Source: Marsupella aquatica
Taxonomy: Eukaryota > Plantae > Marchantiophyta
Direction: 5' to 3'
Assembly: GCA_973895155.1 (NCBI GenBank)
Contig: OZ316899.1
Span: 4,219,241 to 4,283,240, forward strand
DNA: 64,000 nt
In this document: piece by piece, positions 1,495 to 37,916 of the stretch
Layout: each line of letters begins with the position of its first letter
Numbering within the stretch: position 1 is the first letter of the stretch
Program-made: the position numbers and the translations under genes
The notes under the pieces: generated by a model
Seen by the model: only the letters and a program-made list of their open reading frames with translations
Told to the model about the DNA's origin: nothing
Database searches by the model: none

Positions 1495-3483
1495 TGTTAA
1501 ATGCCCAGTTTGACTTGCGATTAACGGACATCTAACTGCCTTCTTCACAGTATCTCCCGCTTAAACGATCAACCGACCTTCTAGCGGGGTACTCCCCTCT
1601 TCCTCTATATAGTCCCCGTAAGTGAATCCTACCAAGTGCTCTATAATGTCTAACTCTTCCTTCCACTTCTTGGGCACAACTGCTTCAGTCAACACCAGAC
1701 CCTCCCTGTAGATGATCTCGATAAACCCACACCAGTAGCGGTAAGTAATTAAACAGATGGGAATACTCTCCTGGCGTAACGCTCGGGTAATCAGGTGGGA
1801 ACCGATGGAACAGATCCACAATTCCAGTGGTCTTAACTTAATCAAGGAGCAAGGCTTGTCCTCCTTACTGTCTACATTCATGGTTGTTATAGTAGCAGTG
1901 ACCGGGGTAGGTCCTGCTGTCCCTCAATCGGCCTTCCTGGCAATCGATCTGTCTTTGGCTAAATCAAGCAATTTAAATAGAGGTATCCGTAGTAGGAACC
2001 CCAGTTTAACGGTTGACCCTGTATGTTGAAGGTGTATGACGACCAAGGTCACGTCCTGGATACACACAATCTCCAACCAGACCTTGCTTCCCACGAGCTG
2101 TCTGTTAAATCGCTGCCTTAACGTGCTAAACCGTAAGGTCCTCACTCGTAGTGAGACGATTTCCATTCATCCCAGCGATTTACGATTAATCGACTTAACA
2201 CATGTTCCTAACGAGTACTTCGCGCGAACTCCCATAACCGCACTCCTCGACTCTCAGTATTAATCACGAATGCCTCTCCTTCTTCGAATGACTTTCAAAG
2301 TTACTGTTTATTCTGACTTAATTCACAACATTCTTCCAATGTTGAATCTGGACTCTTACTCACCGCTCAAGCACAAGGTAATGAAGTTCCTCTGCACTCT
2401 ATTGCATTCATACACATCTCTTTATAATCGAAAACTACTCAAAACGAGTAGGGACACTAATACAAAACGCTGGTAATCTTGAGGTGAGTCCGGCTCTACC
2501 TCTCAACCAAGCTCCTAGCACAAAGTGACAGAGCGCCTAGCGTTCCACAGCCTCTAAATACCTATGCCTCGTGTCCGTCTTTGCTGAGGTTTCTAACTAC
2601 TTTCCGGGGCGCGCCGACTTCAGTTGGACGGTTTGCCCTTCAGCCGCGGTCTCCTGCGCTAATCTGCCAAGAAACTCTAACTGTCTCCTGCCAAGAATGA
2701 TGAGCGAGCCAAGAACCGTGTTTACATGTCAAGAAGATTCCCGTGGTTACTGAACTGTGCAACGACGCCTTTGATTCTCTTCTTTGATGGCGCCTGAACT
2801 GGAAGCTTCCGGACTTTCGATCGCCAATCCTGCTAAGTGTGAAACGACATTTAGGTTATCGTCCCCTTCCTTAGCGGTAGTCGCTTTGTTGGCGACAATT
2901 ACTTGACCGGCGGTGATTAATCGCCATGCAATCCGTTGATCGCAGTTGTTATCCCGCCTTAGTACCAGATTCCACTTCTTCCGCATGACATTTCTGCAGA
3001 ATTCCTCAATGGCCCCGCTGGTCGTGAATCGCTGATGAAACTCTTCGCCCTTCATTCCAAACAATTGTTGCCCGGCCTCATCCCAGACACGATAGCTCCC
3101 TTCTTTCACCCGAATGGTGAACATAAACATAAGCACTCCTTCGCCTAGCGGTTTACACCTATGCCCTACTCGATTTCGGCTAATAGGGGTTCCCATGTCG
3201 GTCCCCTCTTGTCTTTTCTGTTGAGCCCTTGTGCCTAAGGCACAGACCTTGCCATCTGCTAGAAAGCCATCGCAACCTTCATAACAGAACTCTACTCCTA
3301 TCCGGCCACTAATCACGATGATCGTCGCCTCTCCTAATTCTAGCCTTTCCGCCATTCTAACAGGATGCAATGAACTGCTACCGGTCCTTGCGTGCTGCTC
3401 CCTAAATACCCTGGATTAACTTCTGGCTGACGCTTCTAAGACTAAAGGACTATAATTTAACCGGTGTAATGTTACCGTTTACA
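1495..3483 (-). repeat. Element B 3' LTR
   Basis: TGTTAA...TTTACA. Matches 17345-19333 at offset 15850, roughly 2-3% divergent by eye, mostly transitions. Confidence 0.97.
2747..3355 (-). CDS. RPA1 C-terminal (DBD-C)-like OB-fold protein, ~202 aa, inside the B 3' LTR
   Basis: First ATG at 3355 (MAERLEL). Pattern ATI..I......CYEGC......KVC...HRC......FMFTIRV......WDEAGQQLFGMKGEEF resembles the Zn-finger-containing OB fold of RPA70 DBD-C. Confidence 0.65.
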   Translation of the reverse strand: MAERLELGEATIIVISGRIGVEFCYEGCDGFLADGKVCALGTRAQQKRQEGTDMGTPISRNRVGHRCKPLGEGVLMFMFTIRVKEGSYRVWDEAGQQLFGMKGEEFHQRFTTSGAIEEFCRNVMRKKWNLVLRRDNNCDQRIAWRLITAGQVIVANKATTAKEGDDNLNVVSHLAGLAIESPEASSSGAIKEENQRRRCTVQ

Positions 3484-3500
3484 TCCTCCTTTACTTACCT
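3484..3500 (-). promoter_or_regulatory. Polypurine tract of element B
   Basis: AGGTAAGTAAAGGAGGA abuts the TG start of the 3' LTR on the minus strand. Confidence 0.85.
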
Positions 3501-3545: not shown

Positions 3546-6500
3546 TTATTCGACTCCATTGCCCCTGCTAACACCTGGTTTCTTAATTGGGGTGATCTGT
3601 GTTCGGACTTGTGCCTTGAGCTTCCTCACCTCTGACCTGAGATCTAGAATAGATCTTTCCTTGTCTTCCAATTCTTGCGACAATTGGTCATGCTCTGACC
3701 TGAGCTGTTCCAGCTCCCCATTCGCTTTGCTCCCCTCTGGTCGTTGTTTCAAGGCGTCTGCAAGTTGTACTTCTAATTGACCGATCCTACTTTCGGCTGC
3801 TTCCTTATACCTTGCGGTCTCCAGCGTGGATTCTCCTGAAGCCGTTGTTGGATCCCCTTGTAAGGTGGCTTGGCTGAGTTGTGTATCCAGATCCTTGATT
3901 TTGCTTCAGTTCTTCTACACGTTGGCGTTTGACTTCCCACTTGCTGGCTATGCTCTGTTGCTGTGCTGCTTCTTCTTTGAGTTGGAGTCTCAACTTCTCG
4001 ATCTCCTTTAGCTTCTCTATACCCTGCTTCGTCTGTAGGTTGGCTTTTCGGTTCTCCATCTTTACCGTGGTAATCGCTGCTCGGATGGCCACGATTACTT
4101 CCTTATAGTTGCTTGTTAACCCCCCCGCTTGTATCTTCTCGATGCCCAGGAATTCGGCTAAGTCTTTGATGGCTGTTTCTTCGTGCCTCCATCCTCGTTC
4201 ACTAGTCGCTAATCGATCGTTTTCTTGTAACAACTCTGCATTTCGGGTGAGTAACTTCTTAATCGTCCCCTCGGCCTCTACTGCCCATTTTATCGATTCT
4301 TCTTGCTGGGCTAACTTCCTTGCCATGTCTTCTTCCTGCTTGGCTAACTTCCTTGCCATGTCTTCTTCCTGGTTGGCTAACTTCCTTGCCATGTCTTCTT
4401 CCTGCTTGTCCCACTGCAACTGTAATAGAGCACTTTGTATCCCCTGATAAATTGACATCTGACTGACGATCTGTCCCACCATGACGTTGAAAATGCTATT
4501 CTTTTGTACCATTTCGATCTCAGCTCGTAGCCCTTCCAATCCTCCCTCATGCAGTACTAGTTTTCCCTCTTTTTCTCTAATCGCTGATAAAGCGTAATTA
4601 AGATCCTCGTCTTCAATCACTGCCGTCGAGTACTTCCTGGTTTCAGCTGGTCCCTCCTGGTCCTTCGTTGGTGGTTGCTCCGTGACCATACTCCTCGTTA
4701 CTCGCATTGGCGATCGATCGTCTCCTAGTTGATTATCTTCTTTGTATGCATTGTCGTCCTGCCTTGCGCTCTTGCGCTTCTCGGTCGGTTCGACCTTCTC
4801 TGTCTTGTCTGCGGTCTTGGGTCGTGCTACTGCTGGACTTCCTCTCTTGCAATGTCCGAGGGTCGGTCTTGATGATTTTCCCCCTGCATCTCCCTTGGTT
4901 CTCGGTGGGCCTCCACGTGGAGATGAATTTGCTGTAGTCCTCGGCTTGTAGCTCAGTTGGAACACTCCACGTCGAATTCACGAAATCCTCTAATCCTTGC
5001 GAACGTAAGAACTTCCGGTGAGTTGGGTCTCTCATGTTCTTCAAGATATGGGGCTCCATCCTTTCGAATTTAAGCACATGGAAAACTTCCCTCGGACGGG
5101 CTCTACTCGATCCAACTGACTTCTTCTTCTGGACTGCTGTTTCGTTGCCAAGCTCTTCTTCCTCGCTGGCTGAGCTACTCTCTTCTTTTTCCTCCTCGGG
5201 TTCGATTATCTTGGCCTTCTTCTTCTCTGAATCGATCGCTCTCCTCTTGGGCCGTTCCTCGTTAATAAATTTCACCTTGTTCGGGCGAGTTCTCTTCGTG
5301 TCGGGAGGCGTCGATTTCTCAAGTATGGCTGCTGTGACTGCCGCAATCTCCACCTCCGGGTCAGTTTCGGTCAGCCAATCTACAAGCGTAAATTTTTGTT
5401 TTACCTGCGGTCCTTCATTCCCCACTGACAGCACCTCCGACCTCTCGACCTGAGCTTCCGGTACCTTGATCGGTACTTCCTTTTCTACTTTGACATCCTG
5501 CCGCTCGGACCCCGGCTCCATTTTGAGTTCTTGCTCTCCCATTTCCGTCTCCGCTCCTGCTATACTATCGGTGATCGGTGGCTGCTTCCCGACGACTCCT
5601 TGATCATTAATAGTCGTGTCCGCGAGGACTTCTTGCACCTCTGTTTCTATTTCTTCCGCATGTTCTTCTTCTGTGTATGACGTCGTTCCTTCCATGGCTG
5701 GCGTTTCTAGCAGTTCTGCCATCGTCGTGCGTTTCCTGGGGTACTCGTCTGCAAGTTTGCCTGCTCTCTTGAGGGTTACTACCTTCATTCCTACAGGCAA
5801 TGTGTAATATTTGCTCCCCACTCTTGTCCACTCGAACCTCAGTGCTCGCTGATAGCCGCTCCACTCTGCAGTCGCTCGTAGCTTCCGCGCCAACCGCAAA
5901 TAGGGTTTCCATCTTAGCAACTCCCTCGCTGATAGGGGTATTTGATTCTCGGACTCCCCCGTCTCGTAAGCTTTTAGAAGCACATGTAATTTTCCCGTGG
6001 AATAGTTCTCTATGCACGGTATTGAGTTAGGTCCTATCAGTATCCGATCCACCATCCAGGTGGACGATTTTCCGTGAGTACACCCTACGATCACTACCCT
6101 ATACGGAAATCGTTCCCGCTCTTCTTCCTGTCCTTTTGTTAGTTTGTATTTCCAATCATGAACTTGAAATATTTCCGATAGATCTTCTGCTGCTAGTACA
6201 ATTGATTTGATTTGGCTTGTCTTCGCTGAACTAAACGGTCCGCTTGATGGGACTACTTCATTCACGTAATCTGCTAGCGTACATCCCTTAATCGCTGCTG
6301 TCCGTACTTGTTCGTTTGTTCGGTCCCTTCGCTGCTGTCGATAGTGGTTAGAGGTGGTACTTGGCCTGGCCGGGCGAGCCAAGGACGGTCCTGTGTGCGC
6401 TGGTAGTTCTTCCCCTTCTGTGGTCTCCGCCGCTGCGGGGTAGGGAGCCACGCTTATACAAGCCACGACTCTGGGAGATGATTGGTACTCCCCTAACCCT

Positions 6501-6685
6501 ACTTGATTCCGGTTTCTTGTAGCAGCTAATGGTTGATAGCGGTCGCTATCCTCGGCCCGTGTTGGTACTGCATCGTGGTCATTTCTGCCGTCATCTTTGT
6601 TCAGGTAGTCGTTAACCGTGCTTTCTACCTCCCGCAAGTACACGTTGTTTCTAACGTGATATGTCTTCATTTTGTTCCCGTTCAT
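3546..6685 (-). pseudogene. Accessory region continuing from integrase: unknown domain, PMD-like module and coiled coil; broken by two frame changes (~4850, ~3895)
   Basis: ORFs 4733-6685, 3805-4965 and 3546-3752 join into one reading path. The first begins with the integrase end motif NGNKMKTYH. GLEDFV..TW..P...D..KFI.TWRP matches the X ORF. Long heptad-rich segment. Confidence 0.7.
4310..4405. repeat. 33-bp tandem repeat x3 encoding EEDMARKLA.Q
   Basis: CTTCCTTGCCATGTCTTCTTCCTG.TTGGCTAA repeated; ends approximate. Confidence 0.9.
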
Positions 6686-8204
6686 CAGCTGCTGCTCGCT
6701 GCCGTCCTGGCTGGCAATTTCGAAGGTTCCATTCCCCCATACCTTGAGTATAGTGAAAGACCCTTCCCACTTAAGTCTTAACTACCCTTTTTTTATGCGT
6801 GCCCTTTTCCGGCACCAAAGTACCAATTCTCCTTCAGTGAACGTGGTGACATCCCGTTGATCGTCTATCCGTCGTTTGCGTTGTCCTTGTACGTATTCTA
6901 ATCGTTCTTCAGCCTTCCTTCGAGTTTTGGTTACCTCCAGTAATGTCCTTAATCGTTTGCTTAAAGATTAATGTTGTACCCGACGGCGATTTGCAGATTG
7001 GGAAGTTCGTAATCTGCTGGCATACGAGCTTCTACTCCAAACATTAACTAAAAGGGAGTGTGGCCCGTGGTTACCTTATACGCCGTTCGGAATGCCCATA
7101 CTGCGGCGGGTAGCTGAACGTCCCAATCATTCTGTTGGTTGTTAATCACTTTCCGTAAAACGTTGAGTAGGATCTTATTCGTCGATTCCGCTTGTCCGTT
7201 ACACTATGGGTAGTAGGGCGTTGAGAACCGGTGACTGATATGATAGTTGTCGGTTAGCTCCTGGATGACCTTGTTTATGAAGTGCGACCCCTGATCGCTT
7301 ACTAGTTCCCCCGGTAATCCGTACCTTGTAATGATGTTTTGATATATGAACTTAGCCGTTACTTGCGCGGTGTTGTCGCGAGTTGCGACTGCCTCTACCC
7401 ATTTCGTCGTGTACTCCGTTGCTGCCAAAATATACTGATTCTGGCTATACCTGGAAGGTGGGGTAATGGGCCCGATGAAGTCCAATCCCCATTTCTGGAA
7501 GATGTACGACGCTATTATGGGCCGGAATTCCATGTTTTCTTTTATTGGGCCCGTTCGCTGACACAAATCGCAAGTCTTCACAAACTCCCGAGTGTCCTTA
7601 TGGATCGTTGCCCACCAGCGTCCTTGCTGCAGAATCTTCCTTATGGTGATTTTGGTGCCAAAATGTCCTCCGCCTAGCCCCTCATGTGCCGCGATCAAGG
7701 CTTCCTACTTCTCCTCTTCTGGGATGACCCTTCGTAGTATATCATCCGGCCCTTTGTAATAAAGCACGTGGTTGATTAAAGTATAGGGCCTCGCCTTGTA
7801 TGCATAGATTTTCCTCTCTTTACTGGATAACCCGTCGGGGTATTCTGCTGTGCGTAAATACCTTTCTAACGCCGGTTCGTCATCTAAGGTGACCAGTTTT
7901 ACATGGTATGTCTCTTGATCGCCTTGGAATAACTCCATATCAGGCAATTGATCATCCCCTTCCTTACAGGTCTCTCCTGACTCTAATCTACTAAGATAAT
8001 CGGGTATAACATGGGTCTTCCCTGGTTTATAAATGATGGTGTAATCGAATTCTGCTAGCAGTAAAATCCACCTTGCTATTCTGCCTGACAATTGCGGTTT
8101 GTTTACCAAATTGACTAAGGCATTGTGGTCTACATAAAACACAAAGCGATTACCGAGTAAATAATGCCTGAATTTCTTTACGGCAAATATCATGGCTAAC
8201 GCTT
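6686..8204 (-). pseudogene. pol: Element B RNase H (3' half) and integrase, disrupted
   Basis: FAVKKFRHYLLG, DYLSR, H....GGHFG...C..CQ, KWGLDFIGP, SDQGSHF. In-frame TAGs at 7705 and 7204 and later frameshifts. Confidence 0.93.
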
Positions 8205-8577
8205 TGTGATGCCTAGACAGGAATCACTCGGCCGGTTAAGTGGGTAAAGCAGGAAGGCACCCTAGGAACACCTTAGTATAGTGACAAAACAAGGAAAATA
8301 TAAACAATTAGGGGCAACCATGGAACCCGGGCCGAGGCCGGAGGTAAGGCTAAGGGTGAAAACCCGATTAGGGTTAGGGCGCGTTAAGCGTCGGCGGCTA
8401 GGAAGGATCAACGGGAAGAAGGACCGGCAAAGGAGAGGGGTAAGGAGCGCTTGCAGGAAATAGTGGCTCATTTGCGAGCACGAACTAGGCAGACGACTAC
8501 GGGAGGCCAACTACTGTCAGCTGCTTAGGCAAGCACTCGGGGAGAGAGTAGATACCGACGATCAACCTAAGGAGGGT

Positions 8578-11500
8578 ATGAGCAACGTCAATCAAGCGGC
8601 ACATTTCTGGGGATGCCTGTTCGAACGGGCAACTGAGTACATCAAGACTTACGAGGACGAGGAATCAGAAAGGGCAGCTAGAGAACGGCAGGAGCTCGCT
8701 CGATTGTGGGAGCTGCAGAAGACGGCTTTCTTAGGAGGCGAACTCATCAAGGACGAGTTCCTGTGGACGCCTACTTCCAATCAACTCGACGATCTTCTGT
8801 TTTGCAAAGACAGCGTCGTCGGCATCCGAGAGGCCATCAAGAACTGCAACGACATACACTGGGAATTAAAGGGTAGCACGGAAAGGTGGACCCAGGCAAC
8901 GGTGCTAGGAGAAACCTCCACGGCAGCAGAGATGAAGAGGAAGGGAGCCGTCAACGATGAAGCCACCCCGGCAAAAAGAACGAGATCGGCGGCACCAAAG
9001 AAGCCAGCCGAGCAGCAGAGCAGGAGGCAGGGAGAAGCCGAAGAAGAGGAGGTCGATCCCATCAAGGCCATTCCAACCAGGGATGACACCTGGAAGGGCT
9101 GGGCGGCAACCCTACCGGTGGAGGTGCAACTACATTTTGCACGGGAGGAGGATGCATGCTTTACGGCCATGCAGACCAAGAAGTACCAAGGCTTCATGGC
9201 CGGATCCGGCTTGGAGGCCTTTGTAAGATTACCATGGCTGAAGCCGGAGGTACCGGAGTCAGACCTATTAGAATTCGTGGGGTCATGGGAACCCGAGACC
9301 AATTGCACGAGGATATATGGGAAGGATTTCTATCTTACTCCCAAGGTAATTGCCGAAGTGTTTGGCCTGCCGATAGGCAATAAGACCAAAGTTGATACCA
9401 GGAAGACCTTGCCTGACAAGGAGTTCCGGTCGTTCCCCGGGCCATCAACGAAGAATGGCTTCTTCCGGAACACCTGCACCAACCCGCACATAGGAGAGAT
9501 GATCGACTTCTTGCGGGTGACCATGCATTGTAACTTGCCGAGGGCAGAGATCGGCAAGGCACAGGTCTATCTGGCAGAAAGGCCAGACCCAAGCCGGGAC
9601 TACAACGGGTACCTCCTCAACCAATTGAAGAAGATCTTAAAGGAGGAGCAGCAGGTAATCGGCATGGGGAGCGTGTCGCGGCTTGGCTATCACATGCCGC
9701 TGTTGTGCCGGTATGCCAGAGGTCAGACTTTTGCCCCGGTACTTCCCCTGCAGGTAAGGGCACCCGAGGAAGCTCCAACGCCGAGGCCGTTGGCTGAGAA
9801 GCCTCAACCACCTGTTAGTCCTACGATCGAGCAGGTGTTTAGGCCCAGGAAGGAGGACTTGCCGATGCAGCAACCAGGCATGCAGAGTCTGCTGAAACTA
9901 CTGGAGAAAGAAAAGAAATCGGCATCGGCAACAACAACGGCAACGGCAACAATGCAGGACACTACTACAGAGGTAGGCCTACACCGGCTCACAAAAACCC
10001 CTTTGCTGGAGACAAGGAGAGAATCAGGCCGAAATCCAAGCCAGGTGTTCGAATGTACGTGGGAACCTCAAGCTCCGAATCTGAGGCAGAATTGCCTGAA
10101 GCTCCTACCGACGAAGAGGAGAGGGAGAAGCCGGACGTCCAAGAGGTAGAGGAGGCAGTGGAGGACTGCAGCCATGATAATTCCGGCTATGGGTCGGACC
10201 ATCACGTTCCAGGAGTAAGGACCTGTGGCCGGTTTGTCCCCACACTTCCAAGGGTAGTGCGAGGGGACCCCAACCAGCAGAGTAGCCCTGAGTCTCCCCC
10301 ACCAGACGTTGCCCCCCCGAGCTTCGACGGCATAAAACAGACGGTGCAGGAATTTCAGGAGCGAATCAAGCAGGAAGAGGAGGCCGCCCTGGCTAAGGAA
10401 AAGGATTTACCAGGAGGAGATTGGCCGGAGGACATCAGGCGGCTAGCCGAAAAAGGAAGCAAACCTCTAGCCACGATTGAAGAGATCCGCAGGACGGCTT
10501 GGGAGCAGAGGCCACGATGGGCGATGCCGATCACTTCTACTTACTCCACCTACGCTAAGAATAGAGCCATGGAGTATGGTGAGATGTGTGGGGAACTTGC
10601 GCTCGGCATCTTTGGAGAGGAGTTGGAGGTAGGACCCTTTTTCCATAGGGAGCAGTTGGAGAAGCACCAATTAGAAGAAGCGGTGGCTTTAGAGAGAAGC
10701 AAGAAGGACGAGGTCATTCGGCGGCTTAGGAGGATGGAAGCCGAGATTGAAGATCTAAGGGCGGCCAAGAAAGCCCAAGATGAACTGCGGATTAAACGAC
10801 ATGAGCTGAACATCATGCAGGGGCAGTTGGACACCGCGCAGGCTGATAATCAGAATATCAAGGATAAACTGACTCAGACGCAGGAAGAGTTGGCCGACAC
10901 GATCAAAGAGAGGGAGAAGTGGAAGCAAGAGCTGAAGAATACAGAGGAGGCCCACATAACAGCCAACAGCCGGGCCATGGCGGAGACCCAAAGAAAGGAA
11001 TGGGCGTTGAAAGGGGAGCTCGAGAAAATCCGCGGAGCCCTTGAGCAGAAGGAGGCCGAGTTAGGGAAATCCTATCAAGGGATTATGGCGCTGCAGCAGG
11101 AGCTTGCGTCCCTGACGGCCAGCTTCAAGGCCGACCTAAGGGAGAAGGACGAGATGCTCGAACAGACTTACGCCAAGATGAATCAGATGGAGTCTGTCAT
11201 CATTGCAGAGCTCGACAAGGAGCTAAGAGTAACCCAGGAGGAGAGGGCTACCTTGAAGAAGGAATTGGAGGAAGCCCACAGGGAGCAGGAGGAGGCCAAA
11301 AACGAGCTGGAGGGAGCACGTAAGGACCTGGATGAAACCCAAGAGGAGTTGGAGGAAATCACGAGGAAGATGGAGAACCTACAGCGGCGGGCCGACAACC
11401 AAACTGAGCGGCTGAAGAAACAAGCCGCAGTATTTAAATGCTTAGCTGCAGCAGGTCCATCTCCCGTTGGGACAAACCAGTTACCAGGGGTGGTAATTGC

Positions 11501-11939
11501 CGAAGGACAGGCCGCGCCACCTGCACCAGTGCCGGAAGTAAGTGGGAAGGGGAAGGGACCAGATGCCGAGCCACCAACGAAGAAGAAGCGGAAACCTTCA
11601 AGGTCAAGGAGTAATACGACTTCACAGGCCGTGGTGATCAAGGAGGTAGACCCAGCACCGACCCCAGACAGGGTCACGGCTAAGGATCCAACTACCCTAG
11701 GGGAAGGGGAGGCCGAAGCCGAGGGAGTGGCTGAAGCCGAAGCCGTGGGAGTGGCTGAGGCCGAAGCCGTGGGTATTGCCGAGGCCGGTGTCGAGGCTGA
11801 AGCCGAAGGTGGACCCAGTCAGGCCGAGGGAGAGTTGACTCGGTCAAGGGCAGGTAATCTGTCAGTAGGCGGGCCAACGGCAGTGGCTGAGGGGGAAGTG
11901 TTGGGGGCGTCCATTGAGGATCCACCACCGGTGTCGTGA
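8578..11939 (+). pseudogene. ~1120-aa PMD-like + Pro-rich + coiled-coil protein, one frameshift near 9995
   Basis: ORFs 8578-10149 and 10053-11939 overlap; in X2 the equivalent junction (TKADPFVGD...GVRMYMG) is in one frame. SWEPET..RIYG....T...IAEVFGLPIG (~9280-9378) resembles the plant mobile domain core. Confidence 0.75.
11710..11810 (+). repeat. Degenerate 24-bp tandem repeat encoding AEAE(G/A)VGV
   Basis: GCCGAAGCCG.GGGAGTGGCTGA units; absent in this form from X2. Confidence 0.8.
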
Positions 11940-12850
11940 CGGTGCAAGGGCGCCGTTCCTTTTAGGGAGGGCGGACGTGGAGGGAGGAGGCGTGAGTGGG
12001 CAGGGCGGGCGCGGATCTCCACGTTTAGGATTAGGATTAGAACCAGGAGCGGCCCTAACACTTAGCTTAGTGGGATTGCGGTTCCACTGGTAGGAGCAAC
12101 ACTTGTGCTCCTGCCTTGCTGTACATAGGTAGATTCGGGCAAGTAGATTACTGTCAGGTAGATTAGGCTTACGATGCAAAGAATGGCGGATCCACTACCA
12201 GGATAAGTACCTGGGCAGCGGGGAGCTCAGGGCCTCTTCTTTAGCAAGTTTTTAGTTTGCACCAGCCGGGCTAGGATCAAGTAGTACGAGAAGCTCTCGG
12301 TTAGTCATACAGTGACCCTTGTGTATATTCATGTTTCCTCATGCCTAAGAGCTGAATAGAGTTGGCCTCACGGCTTAGTTCGCAGAACTGGTGTATGAGA
12401 TGTACTGTTTGTATGGCAAGTGCATGGTATGACTCAGTCAGAATGAGTCATTTTGCTATTTGTGTGTCGCATTAACTTGTGTGAAGAGTGCCCACATCAA
12501 CAGAAGGAAGGAAAGTAAGCAGGGGAGTGAGAGTTGGATGTGTCGAGCTGAGAGAGGTCTTAGCGGCTTAACCAAGCCTATTGGGGATCATTCCGGCGGC
12601 GGAATCCAAACATACCTAACAAGACGGAGGGGAAGACAGGGGAAGACCTATATTAGGCCGGCTACGTATCTCATGACCCGATGAAGGATCTGTCCAGTAT
12701 ATGTGTGTAAAATGTTAATAGTAGTAGTAGAAGGTTAGCAGCGTCCCATGCCGCTAAGCCGCGGAAACGGCCTCGCCAAGCACGAAACCTGCGGGAATCG
12801 GCTTGAGCTGGGGGGTTTCTTGGGTTTAGGGAGCCATGGGACGCACCACA

Positions 12851-15595
12851 CGCTTCTCTCTCGGTCGTAGTGTAATTCCTTTCATGCACGTTTAACAGTC
12901 TACTGGCATAGTATACTGGTAAATCGATACCTTGTTCTCCCTTCTGTGCCAACACCGCTCCCACCGCCACCAGAGAGGCATCTGTATGTAGATGGAACTC
13001 CTTCTTCCAATCTGGTTCCTTGAGTATGGGTGCATGGCACAACCGGTCCTTGATTTCTTCAAACGCTTTCTGACAGTCGTCGTCCCAAGTGAACGTTTGA
13101 TGGTTACTCGTTAATCGTGCCAACGGGGCACTGATTTGGGAGTAACTCTTGATGTAACGATGATAGAAACCTCCACTTCCCAGGAACCTTCTGACTTGGG
13201 TTGCACTATTGGGGACTGGCATCTCTTTAATGATTTTTATCTTATCTGGGTCTACTAACAAGCCCTGTTTACAAACTATGTGTCCTAATATCTTGCCCGA
13301 TGGTACAAAGAAGGTGCACTTATCAGGGTTCAGGCTGACTCCCCCTTCCCTACATCTTAAGAGACATAATCTGAGGTGGCCTATGTGTTGCTCTTCCTCT
13401 TCGTATATGGTGAAGTCATCCAGGAAGATTTGCATAAACTGATTCAAATACTCATGAAATAACATCATCATTAATCGCTGAAATGTACTAGGCCCATTGC
13501 ATAATCCAAAGGGTAATACGAGACACTGGAAAGCGCCCCATTCCATAATGAAAGTGGTTAGCTCCCTCGCTTCTGTTGCTAACCGGACCTGACTGTACCC
13601 GCTGTACCCATCTAGAAATGAATAAGCTGATTTTCCTGCTACCACATCCAGAACTGCTTCTAGAAATGGTACTGGAAAAGGGTCTTTTATGGTAGCTGCG
13701 TTTAATTTTCTGAAATCAATGCAGACTCTCAACTTCCCATTTTTCTTAGGTACTACGACTATCGGAGATAGCCACGTATAACGCTTAACGGGTTCAATGA
13801 ATTTGGCATCAAGGAGCCTTTGGATTTCTTCTTTTACCTTTTCCGCATAGTTGGGGTTCATCCTATATCGTTGCGTCTGCACCGGTACTGACCCTGGTAC
13901 GAGTCGGATTCGATGTACGCCAATTGACTCTGGTACTCCCTTCAACTCCGTGTAATCCCAGGCAAAAACATCTTGGAATTCGGCGAGTAGTGTAACAAGT
14001 TCCTCTTTGAGCTCGGGGGAAAGGTGCTTTCCTATCTTTACTTCTCGCGGTCGTTCGGTGTCACTCAAATCGACCTTCTGAATGTGCTCTTCCTCGGTGG
14101 CACTCCATCCCACCACTTTCTCTGCTAGATCCTGCAAGGTGGTCTGTGCTTCTTCCTCCTTTAACGAGCACTCCTGAATGCCTTGCGGGTCTATGTGTTT
14201 AAACAGATCGTTTCGTAGATCATGATCCATCTTTTCTCTGGTCATTCCTTGCATCTCGTCGAGCTTGACTATTTCCATATCTGAAATTGGTACTAAGTCT
14301 GGACGGCATTTTAAATAGGTCTCTTCTTCATCCTCATTCAACCCCTCTGCCCAGTTCAAAGTACAGACTCTGGCCATAGGTGGTACACCGTCTTCGATGG
14401 CCTTGGTCCTGATCTTGAAGGTCTCTCCTTTGTGTTCTATTTTTATATAATCCTTTTCTTCCCCCCAGTGTTGTTTTACTTTGGCCTGTCTTAGCCAAGG
14501 TCGTCCTAACAACATGGGTTGTCCTTGGGTAGAATCTGCTTCTCTCAAAACTACCACTCCTAAATTGTACTTGATGCTTGAAATCAGCATTGGTAAGTCT
14601 GGCACGTAACCCAGTGGGTGACAGCTGCTTTGATCGGCCATTACTAGATTAAAAGGGGCCACTAAGAGCTTGACTCTACCTAGCAGTCTGTAGGTCTGCT
14701 CACTCATGAGGTTTACAGCTGACCCTCCATCCAGCAATACGTTCTTCAGTTTGATGCCCCTTACGCTGATCTGTACTACGGCTCCTTGGTCGATCAGGGG
14801 AATCTTCCCAGCTTGGTACAGTGGTACCCCTGGCAGTGTGGTAGGACTAATTTTGCCTCCCAACCGTCTCATTACTGCTTCCTTGCACTGTGGTGCTAAC
14901 TGGAACAGTTCCTCGACAGTGATGTCGACTCTGGTCTTCGCGATGAGTTGCACTAGCTTATCCACTATTCGCCGGTTCGCTTCGGCAGGGTTATTCGGTG
15001 GTTCTTCGTCTCGTGGGAGTTGTCCCGTTTCTTGATCGAATCCCCCCATCGTCACTCCCTCCTCTAGAATTTCAGTATCCGTCTCTGCGTAAGGTTCTGA
15101 ACGCATTAATCGTTCAGGCCGTGGCAGCGTCTCGTTCTGCTGTTTGTGGTGAATTTCATCCGCTATTTCTCGTGTGGTTGCGTCCATTTGGCTCCAATCA
15201 AATCCTCCCTCAGTCTCCGTGGGATTGGTTGGGGTTGAGTCCTCTGGCTGCCCCTGAGATCTTGTCACCACGTATGTCGACACCTGCACAGTGTTCACAG
15301 GTGCTGGGGCTTTTCCCGCTATTTCTTCCTTTTCTTTCATATGCTTCATCCATAATTCACAATCAGGGCCCCTGATGTGGCCGGTTAGTCGACAGTAATA
15401 GCAAATCGGTGGGTATTTAGCCCCACCATCCTTATAAGGCCTTTGGTTTGCGTTACGATCAGGATTGTAATATCCCTGGCTACTCTCCATCCTATCCCCA
15501 TCTTGTTTGCTTGTTCCTACCTGATTTACACCTAGGCTAGGTTTCTTTTTAAAAGGATTTTGGTTGCATTCCTGAGTAGTGTGTCCAGGCCTCAT
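12851..15595 (-). CDS. pol: Element B Gag zinc knuckles, protease, RT and RNase H 5' half (open up to the X1 insertion)
   Basis: CYYCRLTGHIRGPDC, LLDGGSAVNLM, LDGYSGYSQV, FGLCNGP, FLDDF, LHTDAS. Confidence 0.95.
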
Positions 15596-15667: not shown

Positions 15668-16420
15668 TTATGTTTTCCGATTAACCCTCTCTTTGTCCTT
15701 ACTGCTCTCGTTCTTTTCCTGGTTAAGCATCTGAGTAATGCCCTCTAGCCGTATTAATCTTTTCTCGTATTCATCAGCATTAGAAGTGGGATTTTGTTCC
15801 ACCACTGTGACTAGACTCCCCTTCACAGCCTTCCTCATCCAGCTAATTTGTTGCCCATCGGACGGTTTATTTGTTAATCCTCTCATTGTTACCTTTAACC
15901 GTCCAATATAGTTTTGTACTGGTTCTCCTTTCTTCTGAGTCATGTTTTGCAGAATGCTATACAAATCGGACTCTTCCTTAGCCCTTCTGTAATGATCTAA
16001 GAATTCTTTTGAAAAATCAGGCCAAGTTTTGAAATGGTCAGCTGGGTATTGAGTGTACCATACAAAAGTCTCCTTGTCCAGCGAGCTGGGAAACAGCTCT
16101 AATCGGGATGTGTCGTTCTGTTCGTGGTTAGCTCTGAGCATTTCTTTGAAACGTGCTAAGTGGGTATCGGCATCTTCATCAGGTGCTCCCTTGAACATGG
16201 GTATTTTAACCCTTCTAGTAGGAGCCGATCTTGAACTACTGCCAGCTCCTTGGTGGATTTTAAGTCGTTCCATGGCTTCTTCCAAGTTTTCTTCGACCTT
16301 ATCTTGAGTCCTTGAATTCTCGATTCGTTCTTCGGCCTCAAGTCTGGGTCTGCTTTCTTGGAAAGGTTCGAACTCCCCTGCCATTTCCCCTTCGTTGGGA
16401 TTGACGGGCATCTTGCCCAT
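15668..16420 (-). CDS. gag: Element B gag (capsid region), separated from the downstream frame by one in-frame TAA
   Basis: IPMFKGAPDEDADTHLARF...WY...TW..FSKEFL...Y. The frame after the TAA reads directly into RKFCEIHMRPGHTTQEC. Confidence 0.9.
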   Translation of the reverse strand: MGKMPVNPNEGEMAGEFEPFQESRPRLEAEERIENSRTQDKVEENLEEAMERLKIHQGAGSSSRSAPTRRVKIPMFKGAPDEDADTHLARFKEMLRANHEQNDTSRLELFPSSLDKETFVWYTQYPADHFKTWPDFSKEFLDHYRRAKEESDLYSILQNMTQKKGEPVQNYIGRLKVTMRGLTNKPSDGQQISWMRKAVKGSLVTVVEQNPTSNADEYEKRLIRLEGITQMLNQEKNESSKDKERVNRKT

Positions 16421-17322: not shown

Positions 17323-17340
17323 TCCCCAGTATGGTCGCCA
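17323..17340 (-). promoter_or_regulatory. Primer-binding site of element B
   Basis: TGGCGACCATACTGGGGA, 4 nt after the 5' LTR. Resembles the tRNA-Arg-type PBS of Tat/Ogre elements; tRNA identity not verified. Confidence 0.85.
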
Positions 17341-17344: not shown

Positions 17345-19333
17345 TGTTAAACGCCCAGTTTGACTTGCGATTAACGGACGTCTAACTGCCTTCTTTGCAG
17401 TATCTCTCGCTTAAACGATCAACCGACCGTCTAGCGGGGTACTCCCCTCTTCCTCTATATAGTCCCCGTAAGTGAATCCTACCAAGTGCTCTATAATGTC
17501 TAACTCTTCCTTCCACTTCTTGGGCACAACTGCTTCAGTCAACACCAGACCCTCCCTGTAGATGATCTCGATAAACCCACACCAGTAGCGGTAAGTAATT
17601 AAACAGATGGGAATACTCTCCTGGCGTAACGCTTGGGTAATCAGGTGGGAACCGATGGAACAGATCCACAATTCCAGTGGTCTTAACTTAATCAAGGAGC
17701 AAGGCTTGTCCCCCTTACTATCTACATTCATGGTTGTTATAGTAGCAGTGACCGGGTTAGGTCCTGCTGTCCCTCAATCGGCCTTCCTGGCAATCGATCT
17801 GTCTTTGGCTAAATCAAGCAATTTAAATAGAGGTATCCGTAGTAGGAACCCCAGTTTAATGGTTGACCCTGTATGTTGAAGGTGTACGACGACCAAGGTC
17901 ACGTCCTGGATACACACAATCTCCAACCAGACCTTGCTTCCCACGAGCTGTCTGTTAAATCGCTGCCTTAACATGCTAAACCGTAAGGTCCTCACTTGTA
18001 GTGAGACGATTTCCATTCATCCCAGTGATTTACGATTAATTGACTTAACACATGTTCCTAATGAGTACTTCGCGCAAACTCCCATAACCACACTCCTCGA
18101 CTCTCAGTATTAATCACGAATGCCTCTCCTTCTTCGAATGACTTTCAAAGTTACTGCTTCTTCTGACTTAATTCACAACATTCTTCCAACGTTGACTCTG
18201 GACTCTTACTCACCGCTCAAGCACAAGGTAACGAAGTTCCTCTGCACTCTATTGCATTCATACACATCTTTTTATAATCGAAAACTACTCAAAACGAGTA
18301 GGGACACTAATACAAAATGCTGGTAATCTTGAGGTGAGTCCGGCTCTACCTCTCAACCAAGCTCCTAGCAAAAAGTGACAGAGCGCCTAGCGCTCCACAG
18401 CCTCTAAATACCTATGCCTCGTGTCCGTCTTGGCTGAGGTTTCTAACTACTTTCCGGGGCGCGCCGACTTCAGTTGGACGGTTTGCCCTTCAGCTGCAGT
18501 CTCCTACGCTAATCTGCCAAGAAACTCTAACTGTCTCCTGCCAAGAACGATGAGCGAGCCAAGAACTGTGTTTACATGTCAAGAAGATTCCCGTGGTTAC
18601 TGAACTGTGCAACGACGCCCTTGATTCTCTTCTTTGATGGCGCCTGAATTGGAAGCTTCCGGACTTTTGATCGCCAATTCTGCTAAGTGTGAAACGACAT
18701 TTAGGTTATCGTCCCCTTCCTTAGTGGTAGTCGCTTTGTTGGCGACGATTACTTGACCGGCGATGATTAATCGGCATGCAATCCGTTGATCGCAGTTGTT
18801 ATCCCGCCTTAGTACCAGATTCCACTTCTTCCGCATGACATTTCTGCAGAATTCCTCAATGGCCCCGCTGGTCGTGAATCGCTGATGAAACTCTTCGCCC
18901 TTCATTCCAAACAATTGTTGCCCGGCCTCATCCCAGACACGACAGCTCCCTTCTTTCACCCAAATGGTGAACATAATCATAAGCACTCCTTCGCGTAGCG
19001 GTTTACACCTATGCCCTACTCGATTTCGGCTAATAGGGGTTCCCATGTCGGTCCCCTCTTGTCTTTTTTGTCGAGCCCTTGTGCCTAAGGCACAGACTTT
19101 GCCATCTGCTAGAAAGCCATCGCAACCTTCATAACAGAACTCTACTCCTATCCGGCCACTAATCGCGATGATTGTTGCCTCTCCTAATTCTAGCCTTTCC
19201 GCCATTCTAAAAGGATGCAATGAACTGCTACCGGTCCTTGCGTGCTTCTCCCTAAATACCCTGGATTAACTTCTGGCTGACGCTTCTAAGACTAAAGGAC
19301 TATAATTTAACTGGTGTAATGTTACCGTTTACA
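17345..19333 (-). repeat. Element B 5' LTR
   Basis: Direct repeat of 1495-3483; TG..CA ends; adjacent to the PBS. Confidence 0.97.
18597..19205 (-). CDS. RPA1 DBD-C-like OB-fold protein, copy in the B 5' LTR
   Basis: Same length and frame as 2747-3355; about a dozen amino-acid differences, no stop. Confidence 0.65.
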   Translation of the reverse strand: MAERLELGEATIIAISGRIGVEFCYEGCDGFLADGKVCALGTRARQKRQEGTDMGTPISRNRVGHRCKPLREGVLMIMFTIWVKEGSCRVWDEAGQQLFGMKGEEFHQRFTTSGAIEEFCRNVMRKKWNLVLRRDNNCDQRIACRLIIAGQVIVANKATTTKEGDDNLNVVSHLAELAIKSPEASNSGAIKEENQGRRCTVQ

Positions 19334-20159
19334 TTTCTCCCAAATGACTAGGTATGTAGGTTAGAAGCAGTTGGCTGTCTTGAATTCTTCTCAAGATTGT
19401 TTGTTGGTACACATTGATGTTGATGACATTTTGCAAGATCTTGAATTGATCACATTAGTCTTGTATCATTGTGAACTATAATTTGGATAAATTCTGTTGC
19501 TATGAATGCTTCATTTTGAAAATGTGTTCAACTCATTTCGAATCATGCCTTTGAATGTGTTGAATGCACCATATGTTTCATTATACTCTGCAATTGTCAT
19601 GAATGCATAATACTTTGAAAACTATGACTAGAATAAAATAGTCATAGACAAGAGTGCATCTCACAATTATACCACAAATACTAACGCAAGACCCATCAGT
19701 CCTCAACAATTGCCCTATAAGTCATGTTCATTACTCGGCCCTGTAGTTTCCTTAAACGATCTTAGTTATAAACACTACTAACACCAGATCCAAAGGATGT
19801 GTTGACAACTTGGAGATGTTAAAACTGATACTTCTGAAAGACTACACATAGTCACAACTTAGTCGCAAACACCAGTAATCTCAGTTCGTCGGAGGTCATG
19901 GTAGTAAGAGAGGCATGACTGATGGTAGTCACAGTGTAGTCACATTAGATGTGTGGTTTTATGCTCTTTTTTAGTCTAAACCTAGTCATAGTTTGGGTAT
20001 CATCCATGTCACGATGTACAGTAGTATTAGTGACTTTCCACATTTTAGTCACCATTTAGATAACTCATGCGGTCTCAACCAGGGTCACGGTTGAGGAAGT
20101 CACGTTGGTGTCACAAGGGCTAAAAATAGTCACAATTTCTGGTCTCAACAAGGCTCGGA

Positions 20160-22147: not shown

Positions 22148-24455
22148 CCCTTAGTAGCTGACAAGGTCCTTGTAGGGGATGTTCCTGCCGGAGAGAAGGT
22201 GTTGTTGCAAGAGAAGATACCTCAAGTTAAGACAATGGATCTTGAAAAACTAATTTTTGTGAATGTCACTTCTAACGGTAATCTGGGTGTTGCTTTGGTG
22301 GATACAGGCGCGACCGCTTGCTTCATAAGTGGGCAGGCGGTGGCACGTCTTGGGGTGGACGTGCAAGAGTTGCTACAACCATTAGTGTGCAAGTTTGCCA
22401 ACAACACAAAGGGGATAGTGTCGAGAGTGGTACATAGACTTCGAGTAGAGGTCATAGGCGAACAACCAAATTTTGTTAGTCAGGAGATGTTCTACGTTCT
22501 AGACGGTCTAGCCGTACACTTCATTTTGTTGGTAGGTTATCTCAGAAAGCACAATGTTACCTTGAAACCAGGGGGTGAAGTGCTCCATTTTCCCAATAAG
22601 GGCGGTGAGCCCATCGTTGTACACAAAGTTACCAAAAATAAAGAAAGATTTCTTAAAGTAAGTAAAGTGTCATGGTGGAAAGACTTCAAGGGTGGACATG
22701 AATGTTTCTTCTTTCATCTCCACCCAATTAAGGAGGATGCTTCGCAGCCAAAGGTTAAGTCAGCTAAGGTCGGGCCCGACTGCGGTCAAATTCATGAAAT
22801 TTTAGAGGAATTCAATGACGTGCTCTTGCAGAAGCTACCTAAAGGTTTACTCCCGCGGAGAGAAGTGGATCACCAAGTTGAGTTGGAGCCAGGTTTGGCT
22901 CCTCAGGCTAAAGCTTGTTATCGTTTGAATCTGAACGAACAAATGATGTTGAAGAACGCCTTGGAAGAGTTGATCGACCAAGGGTTCATTCGTCCTAGTG
23001 AGAGTCCTTATGGGGCGCCCGCGCTGTTTGTGTCCAAAAAGGATGGTACTTTGAGGTTGTGTGCATATTAGCGGGCCCTCATCAAGCAGACGGTAAAGAA
23101 CAAGTACCCGCTACCTCATATGGATGACCTCTTTGATTGCCTCTCCTGGGCTAGGAAGTTTTTAGAGGTGAACTTGCGGTCTGGGTATTACTAGATCCGC
23201 ATGGCTAAGGGAGACGAATATAAGACCGCAATGCGCACAAGGTTTGGATCCTATGAGTTTTTGGTTATGCTGTTCGGGTTGTGTAATGCAACCGCAACGT
23301 TCATGAAGATGATGAATACCATCTTTCATGACTTGCTGGACCAAGGAGTGGTCGTCTTTATTGACGACATCCTAATCTACTCAAAAATGTTGGAGGAACA
23401 TGAGCAGTTGCTCAGAGAAGTGTTCTCTCACCTTCGTAAGGCTCGTCTCTTTGCTAAATCTAGCAAGTGCAAGTTTGCAATGAACGAGATTCAGTTCCTT
23501 GGCCATACCTTTACCCCGGAGGGGATTACGCCTAGTCAGGACAAGCTTAAGGAGATCAAAGAATGGGAGCGCCCGTCCAATGTAAGCCAGGTTAGAGCCT
23601 TCTTAGGATTTACGGGGTTCTATCGGAGATACCCGAAAGACTATGCGAGGATCGCGAGGCCCCTAAGCGCGCTAACGTTGAAAAACAAAGTGTTTGTGTG
23701 GACACAAGATTGCAAGTTAGCATTCCTAGAACTTAAGCGGCTAATGATAACGCCGCCGGTTTTAAAGTTACCTGAGATGGGGAAGTCGTTCAAGATTTGG
23801 ACAGACGCAAGTGATTATGCCATTGGCGTCTGTCTTCACCAAGATGGGTGTCCTGTGGCCTTCGAGTCATGCAAGTTGGAAAATCATTGGATTGTGATCT
23901 ATGCGTTGAAGAAGTGGGAGATTTACCTTAAGAACGGTCCTACAGTGATAATCCACACAAAAAGCTTGTCGGGCGGGTAATTCAGTTCTAAGCCAAGGCT
24001 GAACCCCAAGGAAATGCGTTGGCAGATGTTCTTGGCGGATTTTGATTTTGAAGTCCGTCACCTTTCTGGGAAGACAAACACGGCAGCTGACGCCTTATCG
24101 CGTAGGGACCATCATCGTGTCAATGGGATCACAATACTCAAATCCAAGTGGCCAAAGGTTCTGGCCGCGGCGTATGGGGATGACAGGTTAGCTAAGGAAT
24201 GACAAAGCAATGGGGGTAGCCAAGGCAAGGTAAGGCACATGTCATTGGGGTTGGATACGACGCATAATGTTAAGTTATGACGATACAAGCAGAGGCGTGT
24301 GTACATACCAGAGTCTCTAAGGTTAGAGGTTCTGCAAAAGTACCACGACTCACCCTGTGGAGGGCATGGAGGACAAGATGCTACGTATTGCAGCATGTCG
24401 CGAGATGTGTATTGGCCGGAGATGAAGCAATCGGTCCTTCGCCACGTGCAAAGTT
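22148..24455 (+). pseudogene. pol: Family A chromovirus copy A2: protease, RT, RNase H and start of integrase
   Basis: [60 protein letters not shown]; several stops. Confidence 0.92.
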
Positions 24456-25396
24456 TAGGGACCAAAGTTGGTCCGAGGGTGGCAGGTCTCCGCAAGCATA
24501 TATGAGGGGAGTGGTGTCACCCTAGGGGCCAAGCACGAGCCGAAGTCGTGAGCCGTGGCGATCGCGACACTAGAGGAAACCGCCACACAAAAATGACGAT
24601 ATCTTCCCAACAGGAAGTCCGTTGGAGGACTTCTTGGGTGCGTTGGAAAGCTCTCGACAAGGGCTACGTCCTCCTGAGCTCAGGTGGGTCTGGGGACACC
24701 ATGGGTTCTTGGGGTTTATGGGTGTTAGCCCGCCCGCTTGCCAAATCCTATCAAACAGCAGCCAAGTCGCGTTCAGTCTCCCAAGGGAGCTTGGCATTGG
24801 GGAGGCAAGGCCAAGTAGGTGTGGAGATTGAGTTCCAAGAGTGTTTGGCCCCTAGACCATCAGTGAGGAAAATTGGGAGTTGGTTGCTAGAGTTGGGGCC
24901 ATTCTGGTCCCGGCGTGTTGGGACAAGCTTTAGGACAAGCTACGCTATTTGGGCCATGAGCATGTCCTGGGGTCAAGGCGGTCATTTGGTGATGGATAGG
25001 TACGAGAGGGAACCCGGACCGCGCTCAAGGAAGGTGCTATTCTAGACAAACAGTGGGCGTGGGTTTTGGTTCCGGCTTATGGCATTGGGAGGACCTATCG
25101 GTGACCTATTTACCAATGTCTGTTGAGCTTGAGTTAGGATGCTAGACTTGGCAAGTTCTAGATCTTGAAGGGTTACTTATTGAGGTGCTTGGTTGCTTGT
25201 GCAGACAGTGAGGACCGTTGAGTAGCGGTTGCATTGGAGAGCAAGTGCGGCTTCGTATGGGAGGGGCCGCTGACGGTGCAAGGGGCACTAGGGTGTTTTC
25301 TCAAGGTATTCCGTGGAAGCGTTCGGGCAATAGGGGCACTTAGGCGTGAGTGTTGGGATTGGTGAGGGCACTGGGCGGCTAGGTCCACCACTTGAA
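24456..25396 (+). repeat. Family A LTR (3' portion) joined directly to the integrase Zn-finger region
   Basis: Collinear with 1-668 and the reverse complement of ~62430-63365. Confidence 0.85.
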
Positions 25397-25414
25397 CCCT
25401 GACTAGGCATCACA
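25397..25414 (-). repeat. 18-bp remnant of an element X terminus
   Basis: CCCTGACTAGGCATCACA versus TCCTGGCTAGGCATCACA at 59613-59630. Confidence 0.6.
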
Positions 25415-36936: not shown

Positions 36937-36944
36937 TAGATTTT

Positions 36945-36962
36945 TGGCGCCGCTGCCGGGGA
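36945..36962 (+). promoter_or_regulatory. Element D PBS, tRNA-Asp type
   Basis: TGGCGCCGCTGCCGGGGA, one base off the Athila-type TGGCGCCGTTGCCGGGGA. Confidence 0.9.
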
Positions 36963-37569
36963 ACGAATTGGAAGTAATTGAAACTCAGGCAGTGAATGCC
37001 ACTTGTAGTGAAGGATTTTAAGAGCTTAGAAGGGAGAATTTTGGCCTCATGGAGCCATCTGTGGAATGGCCGGTGATGACATTTGAGACCTATTCTTTCA
37101 CCATTGACAATGCACCACCTTCTTTTGAAGAATTGTGGCGAAGGAGAGCGCTCCGTGCAACTGAAAGGAGAAAAGAACGCACCATTAAGAAAGAAAAGCG
37201 AAATGGTGCATAATTCTCTGGCAGGGGCGGATTCTTGGTCCAGACGGAGGGAAGTGTTACTTTTTTGTACAGTATCAGGAGAGGAGCGCTGCTTTACTAT
37301 GAAGAGCGCCGCGGGTTGAGGATGTATTGGTTCTGTTGAAGGGGGAGGCCCTGGGTTCAGGGAGATTTCAGGGAGATTCGAGGGAGATCCAAACCATTAC
37401 GCTCAAGAGGAAGTTCTGGAGGAGAGCGCTATTAGATAGCAAAGGACGACTCCAGCCGGAAGCGGAAAATTCGGAGATTGGACTTGTGCGGCAGTTACAG
37501 ACGGAGCGCTACGGGATAGCAAGGGGCGCCCTCAGATTTGAAGCTGGCCCGGACGCTATCATGCCCTAG

Positions 37570-37866: not shown

Positions 37867-37916
37867 GCTGGTAAAGGAGGAGGCAGGCAGTATCAAGAGG
37901 GGTAGAGAAATGAGGA

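Follow-up and report, generated by a model that had tools for sequence, protein, structure and literature searches.

The 64,000-nucleotide stretch of Marsupella aquatica DNA analysed here (contig OZ316899.1, positions 4,219,241 to 4,283,240; hereafter the window) contains a 17.8-kb retrotransposon of Ty3/gypsy order on its minus strand. Wholly inside each of its two long terminal repeats (LTRs) lies an open reading frame (ORF) of about 200 codons, which is the subject of this report. By self-BLAST the LTRs show up as one long direct repeat (1495-3484 and 17345-19334; 1990 nt aligned, 97.2% identical). Once the ends are read the true LTR length is 1989 nt, with TG...CA termini on the minus strand (3483 to 1495 and 19333 to 17345); each LTR starts with TGTAAACGG and finishes with TTTAACA. 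Between the LTRs the Pfam matches on the minus strand are, in order, Retrotrans_gag, reverse transcriptase (RT), RNase H and integrase (Integrase_H2C2, rve). Because gag, RT with RNase H, and integrase all lie on the minus strand between the LTRs, the order is that of Ty3/gypsy and the LTR-borne ORF is in sense to the element. The features are as follows.

1495-3483, minus strand: 3' LTR, 1989 nt, TG...CA, with the ORF at LTR positions 129-737
2747-3355, minus strand: OB-fold/zinc-ribbon ORF, 3' LTR copy, 202 aa from the ATG at 3355, stop at 2747
3484-3492, minus strand: polypurine tract AAAGGAGGA, touching the 3' LTR
3805-6685, minus strand: 3' extension ORFs, one of 650 aa with a PMD-like module and one of 386 aa forming a coiled coil; they stop just short of the polypurine tract and the LTR
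7204-8193, minus strand: pol part 2, with the second half of RNase H at 7705-8193 and integrase at 7204-7698
8205-12850, no strand assigned: nested unit X, 4646 nt, TG...CA ends, 5-bp duplication CGCTT, sitting in RNase H
12671-15595, minus strand: pol part 1, with a CCHC knuckle, RT and the first half of RNase H, up to the insertion point of X
15668-16420, minus strand: gag (Retrotrans_gag, Pfam)
17324-17340, minus strand: primer-binding-site-like sequence TGGCGACCATACTGGGG, 4 nt past the 5' LTR, the same in Calypogeia fissa (locus L001)
17345-19333, minus strand: 5' LTR, 1989 nt, 97% identical to the 3' LTR
18597-19205, minus strand: OB-fold/zinc-ribbon ORF, 5' LTR copy, open at equal length, 13 residue differences

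The coordinates confirm what the original prediction had claimed, a sense ORF of about 202 aa which starts 128 nt within the LTR and is open at equal length in both LTRs; in either copy it occupies positions 129-737 of 1989. Because the gene is wholly inside the LTR, every transposition duplicates it. An in-frame stop is located 20 codons 5' of the ATG, and the homologues from Calypogeia start similarly; both points argue for a stand-alone ORF rather than a terminal exon. The two copies had been said to differ by about a dozen residues, and 13 are counted within the ATG-started frame. At the nucleotide level 19 of 624 positions differ, spread 7/6/6 over the three codon positions (14 non-synonymous and 5 synonymous changes), and the pairwise dN/dS is 0.74. 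The two copies of the window are decaying neutrally and this pair alone shows no selection, just as had been cautioned. Two more sense ORFs are open in both LTRs, at 1564-1881 (106 aa) and 1927-2166 (80 aa) on the minus strand, with copies at 17414-17731 and 17777-18016. None of the loci retrieved contains a counterpart, and both ORFs are probably due to chance.

Relatives of the encoded protein were considered next. An exhaustive HMMER search of 1.84 billion cluster representatives returned 71 proteins at E<=1e-3, 25 of them at E<=1e-10, the best at 4.3e-30 with 48% identity. Two of these, P0030 and P0045, were rejected; they are WD40 proteins in which only a 'VWD..G' stretch matched, in many short pieces. 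About 69 diverged relatives are left, 25-55% identical, and true relatives align across the entire core. The ORF is far beyond chance and belongs to a conserved protein family; thus, it is not a chance reading frame. All species-labelled members are from liverworts and represent two classes, i.e., Calypogeia fissa (Jungermanniopsida) and Riccia sorocarpa (Marchantiopsida); the others are Logan contigs. Searches with the single sequence were empty in Pfam at E<=1, by phmmer against the PDB, by features in the ESM Atlas and in a word-indexed protein collection. A profile search of the word-indexed proteins produced four additional family members and no bridge to annotated replication protein A (RPA). 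As a separate observation, the ORF contains the motif YRVWDEAGQQLFG, which is similar enough to a WD40 repeat to draw multi-stretch false matches to WD40/STAND proteins at E of about 1e-7 to 1e-10.

The family consensus reads ..WG...G.F.YEGC...L.DGR.CALG..AR..R....SR.R.GH.C...G.G..MF.F.VQ.....VWEEAG.QL.GM.G.EF.........C..V....W. (residue numbers here and below refer to the 207-aa translation from TTG 3370; in the protein started at the ATG they are lower by 5). Y30, D39, C43, L45 and H70 are at least 90% conserved in all 63 aligned sequences, C72 is at least 90% conserved in a 24-sequence alignment (A1), and C33 is the majority residue at its position. C33, C43, H70 and C72 constitute a C-C-H-C candidate set of zinc ligands. 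Further, nearly all full-length members possess an amphipathic C-terminal motif (e.g., NLNVVSHLAGLAI) 30-60 residues past the barrel, which falls beyond the 165 residues of the fold model. Several full-length members, the window protein (2747-2761) and P0002, P0003 and P0020, end in the CaaX-like tetrapeptides CTVQ, CVIQ, CRFQ and CRIL. These could be a prenylation box or some other conserved C-terminal motif; the CaaX reading was not adopted, as Riccia members carry residues beyond the motif (NCDWVE, NCHWVV).

The fold was predicted with AlphaFold2 for residues 1-165 from the 63-sequence alignment and without templates (mean pLDDT 87.8, pTM 0.80). From the single sequence pLDDT was 39.5, and that model was not used for fold searches. 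The order in the model is strands 9-16, 19-21 and 29-32, an insert which bears the candidate ligands, strands 79-95, helices 97-129, and strands 132-139 and 149-156. All four candidate ligands fall in the insert between the model strands 29-32 and 79-82, i.e., strands 1 and 2. According to DSSP of the model three helices, 97-104, 108-114 and 118-129, lie between strands 91-95 and 132-139. A helical insert between strands 3 and 4 is typical of the DNA-binding domain C (DBD-C) of RPA70, the large RPA subunit (1L1O structure).

A Foldseek search of the PDB with this model places the C-terminal OB domain of the large RPA subunit (Ustilago maydis, human, yeast, Pyrococcus) at ranks 1 through 16; the best match has an E of 3.2e-4 and a probability of 1.00, with 160-166 columns aligned. 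Realignment of the Foldseek matches with VIA-align gives Z 11.1, 10.9 and 10.8 for the leading ones (131-136 residues aligned), the highest being human RPA70 residues 456-610 with 135 residues, compared with 6-7 for generic SSB/PriB OB folds. A VIA-align scan of 48,161 chains, independent of Foldseek, is likewise led by RPA70 DBD-C (11.1, 11.0, 10.9), followed by Teb1 OB-C (10.3), yeast RPA (9.1), CTC1 (8.4) and archaeal RPA (8.1). In a structure search of the ESM Atlas most of the 10 rows are Rep_fac-A_C clusters with a query TM of 0.61-0.67 and a root-mean-square deviation of about 3 Å. At the sequence level the top PDB profile match is yeast Rfa1 DBD-C, weak at E 0.33, in which 'VWeeagqqLlgmsgqef' is aligned to LFDDQAKQLLGVDANTL. 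The mostly conserved W95 aligns with the F of the Rfa1 strand-3 motif 'LTLF', which we take to be a DNA-stacking residue in RPA70. Among Pfam families Rep_fac-A_C is the one matched by most members (4 of 63), and the register, profile positions 64-116, does not vary between them; the window protein itself has no match to this family (PF08646) at E<=1.

The predicted domain resembles RPA70 DBD-C. The two agree in predicted fold along some 135 of the 165 residues; the insert with the candidate zinc ligands separates strands 1 and 2, a helical insert separates strands 3 and 4, and 'VW-EEAG-QL-G' of the ORF aligns with 'LF-DDQAKQLLG' of Rfa1. There are also differences. Sequence identity is 10-16%. 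The LTR protein is retrotransposon-encoded and stands alone with about 200 aa, whereas DBD-C is the fourth OB domain of a 600-aa subunit. Its candidate ligands are C-C-H-C with a 26-residue spacer, whereas those of DBD-C are C4. The proposed OB fold of the RPA70 DBD-C type is therefore borne out by model confidence, Foldseek ranks and VIA-align scores; the residue-by-residue motif match proposed with it holds in outline but not at the zinc site. We conclude that the domain has a predicted DBD-C-type fold and is probably a very remote homologue, without Pfam-level membership. The whole protein is predicted to comprise a beta-barrel, the candidate C-C-H-C insert, a three-helix insert and the conserved C-terminal amphipathic helix.

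Is the location within an LTR peculiar to this one element? The most informative locus is from Calypogeia fissa (L001). Its homologue P0003 (34% identical) is located at 10001-10630, 2.5 kb upstream of a primer-binding site at 12532 which is identical to that of the window and has ...GTTAACA just before it. Past this site follow, all on one strand, gag, pol (58% identical over 923 aa), RNase H, integrase (74%) and a PMD-like module. This arrangement is that of the 5' LTR in the window. By tblastx and blastn the ORF is the only conserved part between the window LTR and the presumed C. fissa LTR. The prediction had allowed for a one-off Helitron fragment; instead, a second species has an element of the same layout with LTR, gag, pol and integrase as neighbours. 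Taken together with the lack of a significant sequence link to canonical RPA, these neighbours argue against a recent Helitron fragment.

Other loci are less complete. L003 and L004 have only a 1071-nt unit in common, which starts with TGTTACC 111 nt before the ATG; it was considered as a solo LTR, which is not callable as there is no clean duplication. In Riccia sorocarpa (L002, L007, L008) the domain makes up the C-terminus of paralogous gene models 375-826 aa in length (P0024, P0026, P0027, P0046, P0050, P0066). Their module order is a PMD-like N-terminal module, a coiled coil, a RING-like Cys/His cluster, the OB domain and the conserved C-terminal helix. The conserved segments are colinear in the three loci, about 70% identical at the DNA level and separated by unconserved DNA; in L007 the gene is preceded, on its own strand, by fragments of integrase. 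The 3' region of the window element is colinear with this order: integrase, the PMD-like module (650-aa ORF), the coiled coil (386-aa ORF), polypurine tract with LTR edge, and the OB ORF. The Riccia RING and N-terminal modules were sought in the window and not found. Judged from this colinearity, a larger accessory protein of these elements seems to be either the partner of the OB module or the source from which it became detached. On one Logan contig (L012; ORFs 64-816 and 1398-2090) an ORF of the OB family is located, behind a short tandem repeat, 580 nt downstream of an ORF with a SWIM-like motif and a CCHC knuckle. This upstream ORF looks like a Mutator-transposase C-terminus, so that the contig shows a different transposon context or a nested insertion.

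A comparison between lineages yields a picture quite different from that of the two copies in the window. We calculated dN/dS from codon-aligned pairs (still deeper pairs are saturated at synonymous sites): 0.18 for L001/L003 (dN 0.38, dS 2.05), 0.10-0.30 for L005/L006 (dN 0.31-0.37, dS 1.2-3.0) and 0.33 for L003/L004 (dN 0.027, dS 0.082), which are 93% identical and one of which has a premature stop. These values indicate long-term purifying selection on the ORF between lineages. Its absence or random disruption in other copies, with dN/dS of about 1, had been named as the observation which would speak against a function; what we see is some 69 relatives and values of 0.1-0.3 between lineages. 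Long-term purifying selection combined with neutral decay of single insertions is the pattern which a gene serving the element should display. In public assembly contigs the LTR family of the window reaches high copy numbers under two species labels, where the summed word depths run into the thousands. Of the variants listed there inside the ORF, 7 of 16 are synonymous, too few and too collapsed for a test of selection; no indels inside the ORF are listed in either of the two labels.

Further, the region ahead of the ORF has a conserved feature. A G-flanked TATA-like box is present 47 to 69 nt ahead of the ATG in five lineages which are otherwise unalignable; two short Logan contigs depart from this pattern.

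3403-3408, minus strand: TATA-like box TATTTA within GGGTATTTAGGG, 53 nt 5' of the ATG (-53), candidate promoter of the ORF in the window
19253-19258, minus strand: the same box in the 5' LTR copy
L001: GGGATATAAAG, -69 from the ATG
L003/L004: GGGGGTATAAG, -47 from the ATG
L005: AGTATAAGGAG, -56 from the ATG
L006: GGGGGTATAAGGG, -59 from the ATG

The conservation of the box suggests that the gene may have its own promoter at the LTR edge, in which case each LTR would be an expression unit. In the window LTR, TATA-like motifs are located at positions of about 76, 1058 and 1873; the latter two are downstream of the ORF, are kept in both LTRs and would fit the usual picture of a long U3. Under a long U3 the ORF would be positioned at the 3' end of the genomic RNA and, by analogy with the superantigen gene sag of mouse mammary tumour virus (MMTV), would need a subgenomic or spliced message. 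Alternatively, the upstream box would be the promoter of the element itself and the ORF would lie in R/U5. We regard the placement in U3 as tentative.

We propose that an accessory gene of a liverwort Ty3/gypsy lineage encodes a small, zinc-bearing OB protein of the DBD-C type. Its message would come from a separate TATA promoter at the edge of the LTR, or else the protein would be read from the element RNA, at the 3' end. Acting in trans, it would bind single-stranded nucleic acid or serve as an RPA-like module on the intermediates which arise when the element is reverse-transcribed or integrated. We assign a probability of roughly 0.6 to this proposal as a whole. Its parts differ: the identity and the location of the gene are very likely correct, while the role suggested for the protein is tentative and, in our judgement, has a little less than an even chance.

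Several observations weigh against the proposal. No family member reaches the Rep_fac-A_C cut-off; the best score is 14.9 bits (E 0.024) as against 28.5. For the Calypogeia LTR the 5' boundary (TGTACAAGCC, 103 nt ahead of the ATG) is inferred, as the 3' LTR falls outside the locus. Several homologues have neither gag nor pol within 10 kb; these may be solo LTRs or fragments. LTR residence is established for part of the family only, because in Riccia the domain ends long gene models. OB folds of the DBD-C type are often used to assemble proteins and not to bind DNA; Teb1 OB-C and the C-terminal OBs of CTC1, Cdc13 and POT1 are among the structural matches. Lastly, with a CCHC nucleocapsid knuckle already present, it is not obvious why the element should need another nucleic-acid chaperone.

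Some of these points lead to the strongest competing explanation. The protein may act mainly through protein contacts, as a copy of the part of RPA70 which docks RPA32 and RPA14. As such it would form an RPA-like complex specific to the element or divert RPA subunits of the host, e.g., to blunt DNA-damage signalling or RPA-dependent silencing. The best structural matches are all assembly OBs (RPA70 DBD-C, Teb1 OB-C, CTC1, Cdc13, POT1, TEBP-alpha). RPA70 has its trimerisation helix at a place after the OB core equivalent to that of the conserved amphipathic helix found in nearly all full-length members. Further, the protein has a single OB domain, whereas high-affinity binding of single-stranded DNA by RPA uses several. 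Yet the mostly conserved W95, aligned with the Rfa1 'LTLF' phenylalanine, would fit retained DNA binding. On balance, we consider action by assembly unlikely, though the best of the alternatives. Likeness to the telomere proteins, i.e., Teb1 OB-C and the C-terminal OBs of CTC1, Cdc13 and POT1, extends to a shared DBD-C-like structural class (Z 7-10); their domain is mostly partner-binding, and no telomere link is evident for the LTR protein. One may speculate more boldly that every LTR, solo LTRs included, is a self-contained TATA-promoter gene for a mimic of the RPA trimerisation domain. The mimic would recruit or sequester host RPA32/RPA14 and so couple the host machinery for single-stranded DNA, or RPA-dependent silencing, to the element. 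LTRs of this genome would then carry accessory genes more generally, with the nested unit X as a second case. We give this extended version poor odds, of the same order as those of action by assembly.

It is more improbable that the gene is a copy-number or host-side regulator, i.e., that expression from thousands of LTRs, including solo LTRs, restrains the element as does the truncated Gag p22 of yeast Ty1, or that some copies were adopted by the host. The candidate promoter in every LTR and the many copies which stand apart from gag or pol would agree with such a role, as would the Riccia paralogues, multi-exon gene models which fuse the domain with PMD-like, coiled-coil and RING modules. 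However, a selfish element would hardly retain a gene which restrains it, the layout shared with C. fissa, where gag-pol-int looks intact, fits a gene which serves the element, and no syntenic single-copy host orthologue was seen.

That an LTR once took up part of an RPA-like gene, from the host or from a Helitron, and has since carried it along without function is largely refuted, and we consider it very improbable. Plant transposons often carry captured gene pieces (reviewed in PMC7264820), and the two copies in the window do evolve neutrally. Against this, frame, start, candidate zinc ligands and predicted fold are kept across lineages which are only 25-50% identical, with dN/dS of 0.1-0.3; nothing but the ORF is conserved in LTRs which cannot otherwise be aligned; it is present in two liverwort classes; and its likeness to canonical RPA is too remote for a recent capture. 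A chance ORF, for which one could plead that 200 codons can arise by chance in 64 kb and that at 3% divergence both copies could stay open by luck, is refuted by some 69 homologues (lowest E 4e-30) for which a common fold is confidently predicted, and has virtually no probability left.

How does this gene relate to known systems? Helitrons are rolling-circle DNA transposons whose RPA-like genes are situated in the body of the element, next to Rep/helicase, and as a rule encode several OB domains. RPA-like genes in plant Helitrons are mentioned in the literature (PMC3627910, PMC4067079), and in this sense the LTR gene is likewise a plant transposon-borne relative of the large RPA subunit. The difference is that here a single DBD-C-like domain is encoded inside a Ty3/gypsy LTR; no Helitron or helicase families are among the Pfam matches of the large ORFs of the element. 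The superantigen gene of MMTV, the 'LTR ORF', lies in the LTR and is hence present twice per provirus (e.g., PMC2118998); other retroviral genes, too, extend into U3. It shares the position wholly inside the LTR, in both copies, but belongs to a vertebrate retrovirus and encodes an unrelated protein with an immune function. Plant LTR retrotransposons are described as carrying lineage-specific accessory ORFs beyond gag-pol which are kept by selection (PMC7264820, PMC11963269, PMC9289625). Examples are ORF1 of Ogre, the env-like ORF of Athila, 3' and antisense ORFs of Retand/Tat, and an ALKBH domain in an orchid Ty3 element. Those ORFs are internal or fused to pol, whereas the ORF of the window is in the LTR.

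In the searchable literature, the coverage of which is incomplete, we found no report of a plant LTR retrotransposon with a conserved gene inside the LTR, and none of such an LTR gene in liverworts. The texts of reviews of extra ORFs in plant LTR retrotransposons have no match for 'replication protein' or 'OB-fold', and that of the accessory-ORF review none for a gene 'in the LTR'. For plant retrotransposons we thus found neither this cargo nor this location on record; RPA-like genes are described from Helitrons. What is new is how three known kinds of feature are combined: an accessory gene of a transposon, cargo related to RPA, and an ORF borne by an LTR. In the usual view gag and pol suffice for a plant LTR retrotransposon, the few known extra ORFs are internal, and the LTRs serve for control and do not code; a gene for a conserved protein under selection, placed in an LTR, widens what an LTR can be. 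Among transposons the DBD-C type of the large RPA subunit was previously tied to Helitrons. The gene is a concrete candidate for a retroelement-encoded factor which binds single strands or hijacks RPA. Solo LTRs, usually viewed as inert scars, could still express a protein. About 70 unannotated proteins are flagged as a family for domain databases, and liverworts allow direct testing as genetics exists in Marchantia relatives.

As to the window copy of the element, it is dead. The nested unit X splits RNase H, which renders this copy inactive, and the halves flanking X are contiguous in the related Calypogeia element. A target-site duplication of the 17.8-kb element was sought and not found (flanks GTTGG at 1490-1494 and TTTCT at 19334-19338). 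Its absence despite 97% identical LTRs suggests recombination between two copies, or may reflect a later rearrangement. Most of X is taken up by two long ORFs on the plus strand, 8578-10149 and 10053-11939, in which a PMD-like module and a long coiled coil are recognised; X looks like a solo LTR which is itself largely gene. Diverged copies of X are located at about 50135-51172 and 58037-59310. The DNA around the element (1-1494, 23681-25397, 49373-50135 and 62428-63392) is repeated 3-4 times in the window with 80-90% identity; hence the element sits in a nest of older repeats. Finally, the window contains an inverted repeat of 4194 nt, 99.8% identical, at 35508-39701 and 44256-48449.

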